From Fimbriosthenelais zetlandica (lineage: Eukaryota): a DNA stretch of 64,000 nt. The stretch spans positions 24,862,001 to 24,926,000 of the forward strand of contig OZ365113.1 of NCBI GenBank assembly GCA_977030845.1, given 5' to 3'. Numbering within the stretch: position 1 is the first letter of the stretch; the number at the start of each line of letters is the position of its first letter. Positions 21,461-28,180 of the stretch are shown piece after piece. The notes below the pieces were generated by a model. The model had not been told where the DNA came from, searched no databases, and saw nothing but the letters and a program-made list of their open reading frames with translations. The translations under genes were made by a program, and so were the position numbers.

Positions 21461-24400
21461 ATGGCAGAAGACAGCCCTGATGATTACAAGTGCCACTGTG
21501 GTCGGACTTTTAAAAGAAGCACGACATTCAGAAGGCATCAGGAAATAGCCCACTCCACTTCCACTAGTCACAAATGTGCCGAATGTGGGAAAACCTTTGG
21601 CAATGCCAATACATTGACAATGCATATGAGTGTTCATGAGCGCAAGGAAGCATTCACGCGCTTGGTGCGGCCTTCTACCCGTCAAACCCGGTCCTGTACT
21701 AGGAACTGTTTGGAATTAGGCGAGGAAACGCCCAATATCAAATCTAACACAGACACTCTCCCAGTTAGCAATCCAAAAATCTCTTATAAGGACCAACAAA
21801 ATGAGAAGGAAAATCAAAGGGAAAAGCAACCCCAAAATCCCCAGAAAAGAGTTTTATCTCAAAGTAACCGGGAACAATTGAGTGAGAATATTTGCATGAG
21901 TGAGAAGCCATTGAAAATAGCCCGGGTGGTGAAGGAACCCAACTTTTTTAATGGCAAATGCTCCACCAACGGTGGAATTGGGTCACCAGGTATTGACTGC
22001 AGTGTTAGTGGACTTGATAAGCCATTGAGAAACGCTGTAAGTAAGCATAGTGAGGAAAAGTCAGACTCTCAGGACATTAACACAAACAATATTAGCATTA
22101 CAAAGAGGGCAGTCAATGGCGGGGAAGTTAGTTACATAAATGGGGATTTGCCCAGCACTGTGAGTGGTCAGGTGGGAAGCATTGAAAGCAAGAAAGGCAC
22201 GGTGGATAATTGCTCCACTGTTCTGATGCAGTCACACCGAGGGAGGAGACAACATAATAATCAGGCCTCCCAAAAGCAGCAGCCCCAGCAGACTGCAACG
22301 CCCCAGGTAACTCAGCAGCTGGCACGTCGGCGCAGGCAGACCCCCGCAGGTAGCAATAGTGGGGTCCATTCCTCTCCAATCAAGGTTGACTCTGGTCTTA
22401 GCAGCAGCAGCAGCAGCAGCAGCAGTAATAGCTGTAGCATTGGAAAGACCAAGGATGATTCAGAGGCAGATGGAGAAGGACAAATCAGCAGCAGCAGTGG
22501 TATTGGAAGTTCAGCATCGCTCGCTAGCAGTAAGGTGTGCAATGATTCAGACCCAGGTAGCCCAGGTGTGGTGGGGGTAGAAGAGAAGCAGACGCAGCAG
22601 CAGCAGCAGCAGCTGGACAAGCCCTCCTCCCCTTCCTCTCCCTCCTTCCCCATCATTACTACCACATCGACCTCCTCCCCATTGCCTCTACTTTCAACCG
22701 CTGCATCGCCAGCGCTGGCAGCAGTTAGCAATACTGTGACAAGCCATCAGGAGTCTTTACCATCACAAAGCAAGCAGCAGACGCAGCAGCTGCGTTCAAA
22801 GCAGAAGCCAGGTAACAAGGGGGCACTACACAGCACTATCGTTTCTCTCCTTGCATCAGCTCCCATTAACTGCCTCCCTTCTGCTGCTGTTGCCTCCCCC
22901 AACCCCCACCGCCACCCCCAGCCTACCACACTCCCACTTCAGACGCACAAGCAGGGGACATTGGTGGTAGCAGCAGCAGTTGACGCAGCTGCATCAGTAG
23001 ACAAGCAGATAGAGGGAGAGGAGGACAGCATTAGGAGATATACAGCACATCAGCATGGATTGTTAATAAGTAAACCCAAGGAGAAGGACCTCAGCATCAG
23101 CAACCATGCAGGTAGTGAGACCAGTGCCACACTTAACTTAGTTCCTACCACCACATGCGTGGGCTCCAATATTCCACAAGTCTACTTAAAACAGGGGCTA
23201 GCTCCAGCACAATGTGCCTTCTCAGGTATTGTTGGAAATAACACACATCTCCCCTCCATCTCCTCCTCCTCTTCATCCACCTCCCCCTCCCCCTCCTCCT
23301 CCTCAACCTCCATCGAGACACATCGAGACTTGGGGTGTGTGAAGGGGGTTGACACACTTGGCAGCACTTGCTTGGAAGCCTCTGTCTCCAACTGCAAATC
23401 GTCCTTGCCCCCATCTTTCCCCTCAGCCTCCTCCTCTTCCTCTACAGGAACCGCTTACCCTGTCAAAGGACAGCCTTCAAAAAATAGCACACCTACAAAA
23501 AAGGTAACGTCCATTTATACAACTGTCAACCAGCCCTCTCTTGATATCAAAGGCAACAGAAATGTCCACAATAGCAATAATATTGATGTTCTGCAGAAAA
23601 TAGCCCTTACAGACACTGCCTCTGTCAGCACTAATATAAACCTTGGCATTCATGAACATTTGGGGGAATCTATTCAAGTATTACCAGTGGATCCAGTTAG
23701 GATATATCAAACACTAGACCTAGAAGGGAATCTAACGGAGGAACATATTGAACTTGACGAACAAACTCTATTAATATCGAATGATCTAGAGGAGAGTGAC
23801 GACTCTTGTACTATAGTTAACCACGATGATGACCCTTATAGTAGTACAACTCAGGAACATCTACTGTCATCCATTGATATACAAACACTAAGTGGTATTC
23901 ACGCAGGCAAACAATATGTGCTAGTCACTGGCAGTGGGTCGACAACCATAGCAGTGGAGATAGAGTCCCCAGCTTCGCTCATAAACGAGGAAGAATATCC
24001 GGACAGTGTTGGGATAAGTGATGAGGTGGTATTACAAGGGGTCAATTATGATGGAAGCGAAGCAATATCACTACCAGCACGCCCTACTCATCAAGCTGAA
24101 CCAGCAGAGCTCAGAGCACCTCCCAGCGGCCTACATGAGCAGCTAGCAGCTGTTGTGTCCCATCCAGCGCCACCAGGTAGAGCCGCAGAGTCAGAGGAAG
24201 CAGTGAGAGGAGAGGTAGAGGTGGAGGTGGAGGCAGCGGTGACTAGCATAGCAGCGGCAGGGCCAGGTAGTATCAGGAAAAGCTGCCGTGACCGCAAAGA
24301 AAACACTCTGTGGAAGACATTACTCACTGGCAAGGTGTATGAGGAGGTTTTGGACAGTGTGGAGAGTAAGAAGAGGAGGGGAGAGAGTTGCTCAAAAGAT

Positions 24401-27400
24401 CAGGGAGGAGAGGAGGGTGAATTGGAGGTGTGGGGGGAGCCGTTAGAGAGAGGACAATGTACCCTGGTTGACAAGGTAGTTCAAGATCTGGCTGCCACTA
24501 CTACCACCACCAATACCTGCCTGACTAGCAGCAGCAGCGGCGGCTTCATTGCCACACCCAACTGCCAAAGTGTCCGTGACCATCAAGGGGATCCAAAGGG
24601 CGTGGCCATGATTCCCACCATGGTGATCAAACAGGAGCCCACTGACTATAGTTACATGCCCGACTCTGTCAAGCAGGAGTTGGAGGATCAAATAGGGGAA
24701 CATCCCGGTTCCCATGGAAATCCTCTGGAGCATCATCCGGGCCAGCAGCGTCTGAAACGCGGACCCATCCGGAAGCTGCGGTCCGGATCGTCAGCAGGGG
24801 CAGCCAGTAATGGCCTCCGCCAAGTCAACACCACCACCTTTGATTGTGTCGTTTGTGGTAAGGCCTTTATCAGTGAAAAGTACCTCAGCATGCATATATC
24901 ACTGCATGACACGGGCAAGAGTGAGGCAGGATCCAATCAAGCTGAGTCAGGCCTTGTTGAGGGCCTTGCTAAGGAAATTGATCAACTACAACAGAACGAA
25001 GTGAAGGTAAAATGTCTAGATGAAGGGGAGGTGTACAGACCGCCCCCTGTGAACAATACAAAAGTAAATAACTCCAGCAGTGACACTATGCTACCAGTTA
25101 GCGTTGAGCAAATCTCATCTTCAGTCAATAATGCTTTTAAACAACAACCAACTCCAGCCAAGAAGTCGGCAGTCAACAGTAATAATAGCTCCTCCTCCAG
25201 CAGCGCTAAAAAGGCTGCTAAACTCCAGACAGATGGTGGATGGACCTGCTCTCTGTGCAACAAAACATTCGCACATAATTCTGGCTATAAAAACCACATG
25301 AGAACCCATTCTAATGAGCGCCCATATGTATGTCACATCTGCGATATTGGCTTCAAAGAAAAATACCACCTGAAGAAGCACAACTTGTTCATCCACAGCA
25401 ATGAGTTGCCTGAGAAATGCAGGGTTTGTGGGAAGAGATTCAAAGATTCAACAGCAGTGAGGGCACATGAGAGGATCCACTCAGATGCCCGGCCCTTCGC
25501 ATGTAGGCAGTGTGGAAAGACCTTCAAGACGTCAGAGTGTCTGTGGCATCATGAACATCGATCTAAGACATGTGGCCTCGCTCTGGGTGAGATTATAGCC
25601 CAGGAGAGGCTCGTCAGACGCAGGAGGAGGTTCCCAAAGAGCAACTCTCCCCCTCAGCAACAACAACATCCTCCATCACCGGCCAGTGGCTCTGATACGA
25701 ACCCCGACTCCTCTAGTCCCATGGAAACAGATCAAGATACAAGTATGATTGATGCTTACCTCTGGCATCAACAGCAACAACAACAACAACAACAAAATCA
25801 TCATGTTCAGCAACAACAGCAACAGATGCATGGCCAACAACAGCAGCAACAGCAAAGTCAACAACATCATCTACATGCCAGCCACGATGATATGAATAAT
25901 GATGAATATATGCCACCCATCACCCACTACCTCCCCACAACCAATGATATGAATGCCATGCCAAAGGTCAGTAGTCAAGCCAGCAAGCATTCAGCCATCG
26001 CGAACCAGCTTCATTCTTGCGTTCAACCTTTGCACTCTGAGATCTCAACAGCTCTGCATCAGACGCCTCTACCAGCCCCACCCAACCAACCTCAGGTGCC
26101 TCTCTGTGTGGAGGAACACAACATGTCCCCAGACCAAGTCAGTGAGGATGACCATCTCTCCCCCAATCATCTCACTATGGGCATTCCCATCAAAGATCTT
26201 CACTGCCTCTCTACCGGCCCACAGCATGGGGAAACTGTCCTTGAGGAAATGATGAATTCACAGGGCATGTATTCGTCAGTCATCAAACAAGAGAGGGACA
26301 ATTTCGGCTACAGCATGGATGAGGAGGATGAAAACTGGGTCACCACTAATATGGATAAGATCATGAGCAGCAAAGCTGATGATTTTGTGGATAGCAAGGT
26401 GGACGCCATTCTAAGCAATATGGCCTCCAGCATGAGCAATGCATTCGGTATGCTTGGCGGTGACCCAATTGACTCCCCACCCATGCCAGACTTCACAGAC
26501 AACAAGGAATATAGATGTCGCGTGTGTCGGAAAGTCTACACTGATCTCTCGGCTTACCAGCGACATTCCAAGGTCCACACTGAAGATCGACCATTTGTCT
26601 GTCTGAAGTGTGATATTGGTTTCAAAATGAAGGTCCACCTGAAGAAGCACAATCTCTACGTGCACAGCAATGATTACCCATGTGAATGCCAATACTGTGG
26701 AAAGAAGTTCAAGGATTCTTCAGCAGTAAAACTCCACGAGCGAACACACTCTGACAACCGTCCCTTTGGATGCTCAGGGTGCGGCAAAGCCTTTAAGACG
26801 AGAGAAAATCTATGGGGACATCAGCACAGAGGGAAATGTGTGGCAGCTAGGAAGAAACAGGATCAAGATGGCGGAAGCTTTGAAGATGGCTCATCTGCAA
26901 AGGCATCTGTTTTAAATAACGGAATCTTTGCTCATGCAACAGCCAATACAAACGGGGTGACGGCCCAGGCCTGTGTCAATAACAGTCAAGTAACAGCACA
27001 TGCATCTATAGAAAACAACCAGCTCACTGCTCATGCAACCTTCAACAACAGCCAGTTCACTGCGCATGCCTCAGTGACAAACAATCAGGTCACTGCGCAT
27101 GCGTCCATTGTCACAGACCATGGTACTGCTCAGGCTTCTGTCTCTAATATCAAACCACAGAATACCTTTACTTTTTCAAATGCTAATGCCTCCGATTCAC
27201 AATTGATCACCACAATGACCAACTGTAAGGCGATGAATGGCTCTATCCCCAGTACGACCACTGCCCCAATGTCTACCTATGGTGGAAGTTCCCCAGGACT
27301 TTCCAAGGGTCTGGTTGCTCAGTCTCTCCTCACTCCTCCCCTAAACACCAATGATGCAGTCAATGATGGTTCAGCTATTCGGGGTAATCAGCAACAAAAC

Positions 27401-28180
27401 TTGTCTCCCAGGGCAGGTTCGCTTCCAGCAACTTCCACTGCCATGCCACTACAAGAGGGCACCATACCAACAATGGTCAGCGCAATGGCCACATCTACAT
27501 CCAGTGGTCAAGCGACCACCCTCAGTGAAAAAGCCCTCGATGCAGCTTCTGGAAAATGGCCCACTTTGAAGGAGTTTCTCTCGAAGGGCATTGGACCTCC
27601 AACTCCAGTACCAACGTGGACCGGTGGGGTGCAGGGCCAGAACAACAAGATCTCCCAACAATTGATGAATAACAATCTGCCTGAATGTAAATCCCTCCTC
27701 AATGGTGATTATCCAGCCCTCAAAGAGCGCCTCTCCAAGACCTTCTTTAACTCACTCACCACTGCCGACAACAACAACAGCAATAATCAGCAAACACAAC
27801 AATCCAACATCAACGCCTCCTATCCTTCCTCTCCGGCCTCCAGCAATATGAGCGCCCCCTACAGTGGGCAAACAACACCAACTACAGGGACGAGCCCGTA
27901 TGGCAAAGGTCGTGACTCTGTCTCCCCATTCTCTGACCTCAGCCCCGGAGGAAGCAATGGCCCCATTCCATCTTTCCAGTCCACTTTCCTCAAGCGTTCT
28001 AATCCCCCTCCCCTCTCTGCTTTTGGTAACAACCCAATGCTCCGTGGGGAGGATCCAAACATCCCTATCATCTACTGGGACGATGAGAATGATCAGCGGC
28101 CACCTTCTGCGGCTTGGAACTCTCCAGATTCAGACTCCATGTTCCATGATATTTCTGAAAGTGTCCTCACTCAGCTTTGA
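21461..28180 (+). CDS. Large intronless multi-cluster C2H2 zinc-finger protein (2239 aa), putative transcription factor
   Basis: Uninterrupted ORF with 11 fingers: 2 N-terminal (21485-21637), 1 isolated (24839-24907) and two 4-finger arrays (25241-25573, 26510-26839) with ERP/DRP-type linkers. Long S/Q/T-rich low-complexity regions lie between them. Confidence 0.95.
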   Translation: MAEDSPDDYKCHCGRTFKRSTTFRRHQEIAHSTSTSHKCAECGKTFGNANTLTMHMSVHERKEAFTRLVRPSTRQTRSCTRNCLELGEETPNIKSNTDTLPVSNPKISYKDQQNEKENQREKQPQNPQKRVLSQSNREQLSENICMSEKPLKIARVVKEPNFFNGKCSTNGGIGSPGIDCSVSGLDKPLRNAVSKHSEEKSDSQDINTNNISITKRAVNGGEVSYINGDLPSTVSGQVGSIESKKGTVDNCSTVLMQSHRGRRQHNNQASQKQQPQQTATPQVTQQLARRRRQTPAGSNSGVHSSPIKVDSGLSSSSSSSSSNSCSIGKTKDDSEADGEGQISSSSGIGSSASLASSKVCNDSDPGSPGVVGVEEKQTQQQQQQLDKPSSPSSPSFPIITTTSTSSPLPLLSTAASPALAAVSNTVTSHQESLPSQSKQQTQQLRSKQKPGNKGALHSTIVSLLASAPINCLPSAAVASPNPHRHPQPTTLPLQTHKQGTLVVAAAVDAAASVDKQIEGEEDSIRRYTAHQHGLLISKPKEKDLSISNHAGSETSATLNLVPTTTCVGSNIPQVYLKQGLAPAQCAFSGIVGNNTHLPSISSSSSSTSPSPSSSSTSIETHRDLGCVKGVDTLGSTCLEASVSNCKSSLPPSFPSASSSSSTGTAYPVKGQPSKNSTPTKKVTSIYTTVNQPSLDIKGNRNVHNSNNIDVLQKIALTDTASVSTNINLGIHEHLGESIQVLPVDPVRIYQTLDLEGNLTEEHIELDEQTLLISNDLEESDDSCTIVNHDDDPYSSTTQEHLLSSIDIQTLSGIHAGKQYVLVTGSGSTTIAVEIESPASLINEEEYPDSVGISDEVVLQGVNYDGSEAISLPARPTHQAEPAELRAPPSGLHEQLAAVVSHPAPPGRAAESEEAVRGEVEVEVEAAVTSIAAAGPGSIRKSCRDRKENTLWKTLLTGKVYEEVLDSVESKKRRGESCSKDQGGEEGELEVWGEPLERGQCTLVDKVVQDLAATTTTTNTCLTSSSSGGFIATPNCQSVRDHQGDPKGVAMIPTMVIKQEPTDYSYMPDSVKQELEDQIGEHPGSHGNPLEHHPGQQRLKRGPIRKLRSGSSAGAASNGLRQVNTTTFDCVVCGKAFISEKYLSMHISLHDTGKSEAGSNQAESGLVEGLAKEIDQLQQNEVKVKCLDEGEVYRPPPVNNTKVNNSSSDTMLPVSVEQISSSVNNAFKQQPTPAKKSAVNSNNSSSSSSAKKAAKLQTDGGWTCSLCNKTFAHNSGYKNHMRTHSNERPYVCHICDIGFKEKYHLKKHNLFIHSNELPEKCRVCGKRFKDSTAVRAHERIHSDARPFACRQCGKTFKTSECLWHHEHRSKTCGLALGEIIAQERLVRRRRRFPKSNSPPQQQQHPPSPASGSDTNPDSSSPMETDQDTSMIDAYLWHQQQQQQQQQNHHVQQQQQQMHGQQQQQQQSQQHHLHASHDDMNNDEYMPPITHYLPTTNDMNAMPKVSSQASKHSAIANQLHSCVQPLHSEISTALHQTPLPAPPNQPQVPLCVEEHNMSPDQVSEDDHLSPNHLTMGIPIKDLHCLSTGPQHGETVLEEMMNSQGMYSSVIKQERDNFGYSMDEEDENWVTTNMDKIMSSKADDFVDSKVDAILSNMASSMSNAFGMLGGDPIDSPPMPDFTDNKEYRCRVCRKVYTDLSAYQRHSKVHTEDRPFVCLKCDIGFKMKVHLKKHNLYVHSNDYPCECQYCGKKFKDSSAVKLHERTHSDNRPFGCSGCGKAFKTRENLWGHQHRGKCVAARKKQDQDGGSFEDGSSAKASVLNNGIFAHATANTNGVTAQACVNNSQVTAHASIENNQLTAHATFNNSQFTAHASVTNNQVTAHASIVTDHGTAQASVSNIKPQNTFTFSNANASDSQLITTMTNCKAMNGSIPSTTTAPMSTYGGSSPGLSKGLVAQSLLTPPLNTNDAVNDGSAIRGNQQQNLSPRAGSLPATSTAMPLQEGTIPTMVSAMATSTSSGQATTLSEKALDAASGKWPTLKEFLSKGIGPPTPVPTWTGGVQGQNNKISQQLMNNNLPECKSLLNGDYPALKERLSKTFFNSLTTADNNNSNNQQTQQSNINASYPSSPASSNMSAPYSGQTTPTTGTSPYGKGRDSVSPFSDLSPGGSNGPIPSFQSTFLKRSNPPPLSAFGNNPMLRGEDPNIPIIYWDDENDQRPPSAAWNSPDSDSMFHDISESVLTQL

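Follow-up and report, generated by a model that had tools for sequence, protein, structure and literature searches.

What is the eleven-residue repeat that follows the second zinc-finger array of a large protein encoded in the genome of Fimbriosthenelais zetlandica, and what might it do there? The window, which is the whole stretch of 64,000 nucleotides that we analyzed (positions 24,862,001–24,926,000 of contig OZ365113.1, assembly GCA_977030845.1, forward strand), carries the host gene at positions 21461–28180 of the plus strand, the strand of all the window features described below. The list of open reading frames and the translation give it as a single uninterrupted exon coding for 2239 amino acids (aa), and two full-length orthologs (P0001 and P0002) align with the product from the region of the start methionine through the last residue. 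Pfam recognizes only zf-C2H2 (PF00096) in the host protein, in 11 stretches (E 7e-35, 117.9 bits versus a cut-off of 25.2), which makes it a C2H2 zinc-finger protein. The repeat begins 19 residues past the last finger of array 2. Its conservation argues that selection has maintained it as a genuine and ancient protein module, and structure prediction moderately supports an antiparallel beta-meander formed by its units.

Eight in-frame units of 11 residues occupy positions 26897–27160, seven of them full and the eighth decaying after 7 residues, with the consensus A-[HQ]-A-[ST]-[VI]-x-N-N-[QG]-V-T. The units read AKASVLNNGIF (26897–26929), AHATANTNGVT (26930–26962), AQACVNNSQVT (26963–26995), AHASIENNQLT (26996–27028), AHATFNNSQFT (27029–27061), AHASVTNNQVT (27062–27094), AHASIVTDHGT (27095–27127) and AQASVSNIKPQ (27128–27160). 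The eight units that a first-pass annotation had listed match the translation of residues 1813–1896 (nucleotides 26897–27148) exactly, and the last of them can be extended to a complete 11 residues, ending at nucleotide 27160. Compared with itself at a lag of 11 residues, the 88-residue stretch shows an identity of 0.44; the values are 0.50 at a lag of 22 and 0.49 at a lag of 33. None of 20,000 composition-preserving shuffles reaches 0.44 (best-lag mean 0.18, standard deviation 0.02, maximum 0.30), and the period-11 signal of the repeat is the strongest in the whole protein.

The nucleotides beneath this regular pattern have diverged. Comparing units in pairs gives an identity of 0.65 for first codon positions, 0.71 for second and 0.33 for third, and a DNA identity of 56%. 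The codons for the first alanine of successive units (GCA, GCT, GCC, GCA, GCT, GCG, GCG and GCT) use all four GCN forms, in agreement with the earlier statement that synonymous positions differ. Tandem Repeats Finder detects no 33-nucleotide array in the repeat, only a trivial 11-nucleotide match of 2 copies.

We estimated selection against the DNA of P0001 (locus L001), the nearest ortholog, at a synonymous rate (dS) of about 0.7–1 and a gene-wide synonymous divergence of ~1 per site. The ratio of non-synonymous to synonymous rates (dN/dS) is 0.039 in the repeat, 0.044 in finger array 1, 0.032 in the C-terminal 200 residues (aa 2041–2239), 0.075 in the linker between the arrays, 0.40 in the 1085 low-complexity residues of the N-terminus and 0.16 over the whole gene. 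By this measure, the 88-residue repeat is constrained as strongly as the fingers. Comparison with P0002 gives 71% identity in the repeat versus 44% in the poorly conserved linker of 19 residues, basic then acidic, that leads from the last finger to unit 1 (aa 1794–1812; positions 26840–26896); segments downstream of the repeat are 59%, 39% and 55% identical. Same-numbered units of the window and P0002 share 0.70 identity versus 0.45 for other-numbered units, and the best match is the unit's own counterpart in 7 of the 8 cases. The units are therefore positionally orthologous, and the array appears old and static, without concerted evolution. The positional signal fades at the depth of P0021 and P0031 (0.42 versus 0.38). 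Together with the randomized third positions and the low dN/dS of the repeat, this positional orthology sustains the first-pass claim that selection at the protein level, rather than slippage, accounts for the array. As a separate observation, the proportion of synonymous differences from the nearest ortholog is 0.445 in the repeat (26897–27148) versus 0.573 gene-wide and 0.71–0.78 in the fingers, a difference of ~2 standard errors over 84 codons that may be noise or codon bias.

How far does the repeat extend through the family? A word-based search with the tail retrieved P0001 (84% identical in the tail) and P0002 (57%), each of which carries eight units, ordered as in the window and ungapped. 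An exhaustive profile search was dominated by poly-zinc-finger proteins, and only two kinds of row were usable: those with a match extending beyond the fingers and those with just 2–4 matched stretches. The match continued past the fingers in eight rows, and a further word-based search added P0156. Recognizable units, 4–8 in number, are present in 10 orthologous sequences (P0001, P0002, P0004, P0037, P0021, P0031, P0033, P0043, P0156 and P0129), where they start after a linker of variable length, 20–45 residues behind the second array. Unit number (eight) and order agree among P0001, P0002 and P0004, and P0037 has seven clear units and a degenerate first one. We also searched with the repeat alone in a collection of 5.8 billion proteins, among proteins of 905–2880 aa; 390 candidates shared words with the repeat, and those that passed were orthologs only. 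No chain of such 11-residue units was found in the other poly-finger proteins retrieved. The only name that a cluster look-up of the family yields is ‘uncharacterized Zn-finger protein’ (P0121), and the family is absent from model organisms as far as can be recognized among the matches. We know of no member of the family that has been studied.

A logo of 65 in-register units shows which positions carry the constraint. Alanine occupies position 1 in 61 of the 65 units and position 3 in 59. Position 2 is histidine (30/65) or glutamine (18/65), and position 4 is mostly serine (24/65) or threonine (18/65), with valine, cysteine and isoleucine also accepted. Valine (31/65) and isoleucine (16/65) are common at position 5, position 6 is variable, and asparagine follows at positions 7 (36/65) and 8 (31/65). 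Position 9 is glutamine (22/65) or glycine (11/65), position 10 valine (29/65) and position 11 threonine (40/65). The only columns invariant across all 11 aligned sequences (alignment A2) are alanines of units 3–5: Ala 3 of unit 3, whose Ala 1 is kept in at least 90% of the sequences, and both alanines of the Ala-x-Ala pair in unit 4 (columns A46 and A48) and in unit 5 (columns A57 and A59). Nearly all indels among the orthologs fall at unit positions 6–10, which are predicted loops, and the T-A-H-A-S-V core has no indel except at one ambiguously aligned site.

The alternation of residues along each unit points to a beta-strand. On the Eisenberg scale, and in three species, the hydrophobic moment is 0.16–0.34 at 163.6 degrees versus 0.03–0.05 at 98.2 degrees, with its peak at 164 degrees, the beta harmonic. 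AlphaFold2, given the segment alone and the 11-sequence alignment, returns a model with a mean predicted local distance difference test score (pLDDT) of 71.8, values of 75–82 over the repeat and a predicted template modeling score of 0.53. The model is an open antiparallel meander of eight strands, one per unit, with two open edge strands. Each strand includes positions 10 and 11 and positions 1–5, and the loops lie at positions 6–9. In unit 1 the strand covers positions 1–7 and the N-G pair falls in the turn; units 2, 6 and 7 are supported alike by the translation, the family alignment and a predicted strand. The last predicted strand, in unit 8, spans residues E88–97 of the construct (nucleotides 27122–27151), and the motif decays past position 7. 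Around units 3 and 5, two-residue loops alternate with loops of four residues, in agreement with the extra lag-22 signal in this species. Judging by the strand boundaries, the Ala-x-Ala pairs of neighboring strands would lie side by side. A prediction for the 556-residue C-terminus with 3 sequences also draws strands over the repeat, at low confidence and with the same topology, and gives the rest of the tail a pLDDT of 22–28. A coil with 22-residue turns of two strands each may be an alternative to the meander.

Comparisons of the model with known structures return sheets of the same general kind. Foldseek finds no match in the PDB at E ≤0.001, only weak similarity to up-and-down barrels such as FABP and avidin (template modeling scores of 0.25–0.4). 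An exhaustive structural aligner returns open antiparallel meanders, among them walls of outer-membrane barrels (BtuB, Z 10.2, root-mean-square deviation [rmsd] 2.1 Å, 88 residues), phage baseplate sheets, the free-standing single-layer G-box sheet of the centriole protein CPAP/SAS-4 (4bxp_A, Z 8.1, 72 residues, rmsd 3.8; 4by2_A, Z 7.9) and, weakly, the central sheet of Borrelia OspA (Z 6.4). According to the aligner's own guidance, Z values of ~8–10 are common for models without true relatives, including unrelated sheets, and the query here is a model of moderate confidence. Searches by shape in the AFDB clusters and the Atlas give only generic meander sheets, mostly unnamed or from phage tail proteins.

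The nearest eukaryotic shape is the CPAP G-box, which is also the best mechanistic analogy. It comprises 17 strands in a single, fully solvent-exposed sheet, binds a peptide on its face and forms end-to-end fibrils; the sheet is continuous in crystals, and assemblies form in solution in a concentration-dependent manner (PMC3824074). Like the predicted meander, the G-box is built from tandem strand-plus-turn units that form an open antiparallel sheet without a conventional core, and it is set in a large, mostly non-globular eukaryotic protein. However, the two have no sequence relationship: the repeat combines Ala-x-Ala with N-N-Q where the G-box is rich in glycine, it is predicted to have 8 strands instead of 17, and its host is a zinc-finger DNA-binding protein. 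Consistent with this, the G-box family TCP10_C (PF07202) has no Pfam match at E ≤1 in the window segment or in 11 orthologs. OspA resembles the model as a free-standing antiparallel meander of beta-hairpins, yet it is a bacterial lipoprotein with globular caps at both ends of the sheet, no regular repeat and no sequence similarity to the module.

Other described families match no better. The first-pass annotation had recognized no named domain, and Pfam agrees, with no family shared among 11 members and a best single match of E 0.008. A profile search of PDB sequences gives a best match at E 0.9 (27 residues of yojF), and the ESM Atlas look-alikes include no usable match for the C-terminal 444 aa or for a 110-aa segment. 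Beta-solenoid repeats (pentapeptide, hexapeptide LbH and RTX) are represented only by an isolated LbH_EIF2B match in 1 of 11 members (E 0.038), well short of a significant score; the AlphaFold2 model consists of antiparallel hairpins rather than solenoid coils, and antiparallel meanders head the structural matches. We regard the module as a family that is new in sequence but whose structural kind is known, most like the single-layer sheets of the G-box and OspA and a member of neither.

If the predicted fold is correct, it suggests how the module could work. Each unit would contribute a short amphipathic strand (V-T-A-[HQ]-A-[ST]-[VI]) and an asparagine-rich turn (x-N-N-[QG]), and the eight units would join into an open antiparallel meander anchored ~20 residues past the second finger array. 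With the near-invariant Ala-x-Ala pair at mid-strand, one face of the sheet would display a stripe of residues that are small (Ala 1 and Ala 3) or aliphatic (Val/Ile 5 and Val 10), and the opposite face would display His/Gln 2, Ser/Thr 4 and Thr 11. A sheet of this kind lacks a core, so the function would reside in its two faces, and the rigid, flat surface could serve as a docking platform near the DNA that links the DNA-bound factor to another copy of the same protein or to a different partner. We infer this docking or self-association role only by analogy with the CPAP G-box. The reading of the repeat as a folded docking platform, taken as a whole, seems to us somewhat probable. We think it unlikely, though not far-fetched, that the repeat represents a new class of single-layer beta-sheet domain, free-standing within a protein that binds specific DNA sequences, and that its alanine-striped face or open edge strands join DNA-bound molecules into ordered dimers or filaments.

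Several results weigh against a folded platform, beginning with the aligner's guidance on the Z values above. The fold comes from one AlphaFold2 run with 11 sequences, and its five models range in pLDDT from 57 to 72; in the 556-residue construct with 3 sequences, the pLDDT of the repeat is only 30–45. AlphaFold2 can also model a periodic sequence as a regular sheet even when it is not really folded. A single-sequence predictor leaves the segment unfolded, with a pLDDT of 35–37. The beta character offered by the first-pass annotation is nevertheless supported by the moment and the eight-strand model, while the beta-solenoid and the polymerization that it also named are conjectural. An isolated single-layer sheet, having no hydrophobic core, may moreover need a partner for stability. 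A prediction for a complex of two copies scored 0.00, but the run was single-sequence, with the alignment unused and without controls, and it gave each copy's own fold a pLDDT of only 35–37; this score counts neither for nor against self-association.

The distribution of the module counts against the platform as well. Eight more divergent family members, identified by the same two arrays, by the tail motifs LPPFETF and CPTIQ and, in several cases, by the C-terminal motif described below, do not have the repeat. Absence or degeneration in orthologs had been named at the outset as a sign against the module, and the evidence is mixed, with the repeat kept in 10 orthologous sequences and absent in these 8. 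Sequences with the repeat group together in a quick tree, requiring two state changes (as few in none of 500 label shuffles), and the ten repeat-bearing orthologs fall into at least 4 deeply separated groups; this tree is unrooted and its branches are long (at least 1 change per column). Three of the members without the repeat (P0100, P0121 and P0114) share a different motif just after the second array, approximately NVRLFHSAEFGPILGVPVNA[KR]LVF followed by PTAVV[AT]PI[KR]R. In these proteins, a different module thus seems to have taken the place of the repeat.

The alternative that survives best dispenses with the fold. The eight units would be a disordered array of short linear motifs (T-A-H-A-S/T-V) that one kind of partner domain recognizes repeatedly, for example through beta-strand addition, giving multivalent recruitment. 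The host is mostly low-complexity and AlphaFold2 leaves the post-finger sequence except the repeat below pLDDT 30, both of which suit this reading, as do the failure of the single-sequence predictor to fold the segment, the core of ~6–7 residues, typical in size of a linear motif, and the number of units, which varies from 4 to 8 between lineages. However, no gap breaks the spacing within the window's clade, and indels occur only between the cores. The small, near-invariant alanines of the Ala-x-Ala pair are easier to explain by packing than by recognition, the alternation of polarity is that of a beta-strand, and AlphaFold2 with the family alignment reaches a pLDDT of 75–82. We consider such an array of linear motifs a tenable but improbable account.

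Stacking of the units between molecules is more doubtful. The first-pass annotation had raised amyloid-like polymerization. On such a reading, the Asn/Gln-rich units would form cross-beta structures, either end-to-end like the fibrils of the G-box or in a steric zipper, and would thereby gather the factor into clusters on chromatin. Asparagine and glutamine make up 22% of the segment, each unit has an N-N-Q or N-G element, the predicted sheet exposes two open edge strands, and the CPAP G-box, the nearest eukaryotic shape, does form concentration-dependent assemblies (PMC3824074). Short Asn/Gln-rich beta units that could stack are also what the repeat has in common with amyloid and prion-like motifs (HET-s, RHIM and the N/Q-rich Sup35 type). 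Unlike in those motifs or in a uniform prion-like tract, the units keep their own identity across species in the window's clade and are not interchangeable. Pfam gives no match to HET-s (PF11558), RHIM (PF12721) or other amyloid signaling motifs at E ≤1, and neither the G-x-Q-x-G nor the I/V-Q-I/V-G core appears in the unit logo.

Could the repeated hydroxyl residues be the point of the array? Thr 11 and Ser/Thr 4 could be recurrent sites of O-linked N-acetylglucosamine (O-GlcNAc) addition or phosphorylation that tune the adjacent DNA-binding array. Threonine at position 11 in 40 of the 65 units and serine or threonine at position 4 in 42 would fit such a substrate, and modification is frequent in the Ser/Thr-rich parts of nuclear factors. 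Yet the most conserved residues are the two alanines rather than those with hydroxyl groups, position 4 tolerates valine, cysteine and isoleucine, and no kinase or OGT consensus is evident, though no test was aimed at one. This explanation strikes us as quite improbable.

An amphipathic 11/3 helix of the kind known from apolipoproteins, alpha-synuclein, perilipins, group 3 LEA proteins and type I antifreeze proteins is highly improbable. The 11-residue period is shared with all of these, and type I antifreeze proteins are, like the repeat, rich in alanine, threonine and asparagine; the period and this composition are all that speak for a helix. The repeat differs from them in its many beta-branched residues and Asn/Gly turn formers, and AlphaFold2 predicts strands and no helix. 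We rejected the helical reading because the hydrophobic moment, which has its maximum near 98–100 degrees in amphipathic 11-mer helices, nearly vanishes in all three species at the helical harmonic but is strong at the beta one.

The chance that the repeat is a recent in-frame DNA minisatellite without protein function is practically negligible: the genome does contain 33-nucleotide minisatellites, some of which weakly match the repeat profile, but the DNA identity of 56%, the third-position identity of 33% and the absence of a 33-nucleotide array in the Tandem Repeats Finder output contradict it, and unit number and order are constant in orthologs at a dS of ~1 and beyond.

Those weak matches emerged when the entire assembly was searched with the repeat, both as a profile and as a protein, and we inspected them individually except for one on C29 (E 0.005). 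The inspected extra matches (L003, L005 and L006–L011) are untranslatable 33-nucleotide minisatellites or other repetitive non-coding DNA, and no paralog of the module is among them, with the single weak C29 match left uninspected. A minisatellite on C22 (L006:672–1724; G000:C22:314200–315252) has 32 copies of a 33-nucleotide unit with 95% DNA identity, reads ILTQGSINNQQ and is bordered by stop codons. The array on C38 (L003; G000:C38:13664933–13665163) is a non-coding tandem repeat that reads IIAHQTPCNSG seven times, and the stretch on C19 (L005; G000:C19:21654938–21655153) is repetitive and interrupted by stop codons. The C22, C38 and C19 arrays are chance look-alikes. The minisatellites of this genome also serve as a control for recent slippage (95% DNA identity), which the module (56%) does not resemble.

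The rest of the host protein provides the setting of the module. Its fingers comprise 2 at the N-terminus, 1 lone finger at aa 1127–1149 and two 4-finger arrays, and the remainder is mostly low-complexity. Array 1 (aa 1261–1371; positions 25241–25573) is an internal paralog of array 2 (aa 1684–1793; positions 26510–26839), which lies directly upstream of the repeat; BLASTP aligns the two without gaps at 57% identity over 109 aa (E 1e-48). Array 2 is 97% identical to that of P0001 and 87% to that of P0002. Both arrays match solved DNA-binding C2H2 structures, for array 1 including ZNF568, CTCF and PRDM9, and these PDB matches are generic. Both arrays are kept throughout the family, which places their duplication before its radiation. 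Between them lies a poly-Gln/His tract (aa 1435–1472; positions 25763–25876) that has a different length in P0001 and is missing in P0002, indicating a fast-evolving, low-complexity region.

The tail behind the second array is 446 residues long. It ends in a conserved motif, IPIIYWDD ... MFHDISESVLTQL (aa 2201–2239; positions 28061–28177), which is found family-wide, including in most or several of the members without the repeat, and serves as a marker of orthology. Other strongly conserved short islands of the tail are GKWPTLKEFL (27551–27598), DYPALKERLS (27707–27736) and GPIPSFQSTFL (27959–27997). Neither these islands nor the C-terminal motif has a Pfam match. In the ortholog contig L012, a polypyrimidine-AG sequence at positions 270–390 is a likely splice acceptor ~100 nucleotides upstream of the start codon and hints at an intron in the 5′ untranslated region ahead of the single coding exon. 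L012 also has no poly(A), and together with the likely acceptor upstream of the ATG this makes it look genomic rather than a transcript.

The non-finger parts of large zinc-finger factors are usually dismissed as disordered filler. Here, a regular sequence under finger-like constraint extends over 88 residues, and Pfam, the PDB sequences and the search of 5.8 billion proteins place it in no described family. The practical value of the finding is modest. If the fold is real, the small known set of core-less, single-layer beta-sheets, which are rare (OspA and the CPAP G-box), would gain a member. To our knowledge, the G-box is the only eukaryotic assembly module built as a single-layer sheet, and the repeat would be the second. 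C2H2 factors can carry BTB, SCAN or ZAD domains, compact modules for self-association or partner binding such as we propose here. Those domains are N-terminal, helical or zinc-bound and have Pfam models, whereas the module is C-terminal to the fingers, repeat-built and predicted to be all-beta. If the units remain unfolded, they would still be a clean example of a deeply conserved array of multivalent motifs. If the fold is true, the module would give a handle on how an invertebrate family of factors assembles on DNA, and, should the assembly reading hold, it would be a beta-sheet counterpart of the BTB, SCAN and ZAD oligomerization domains.

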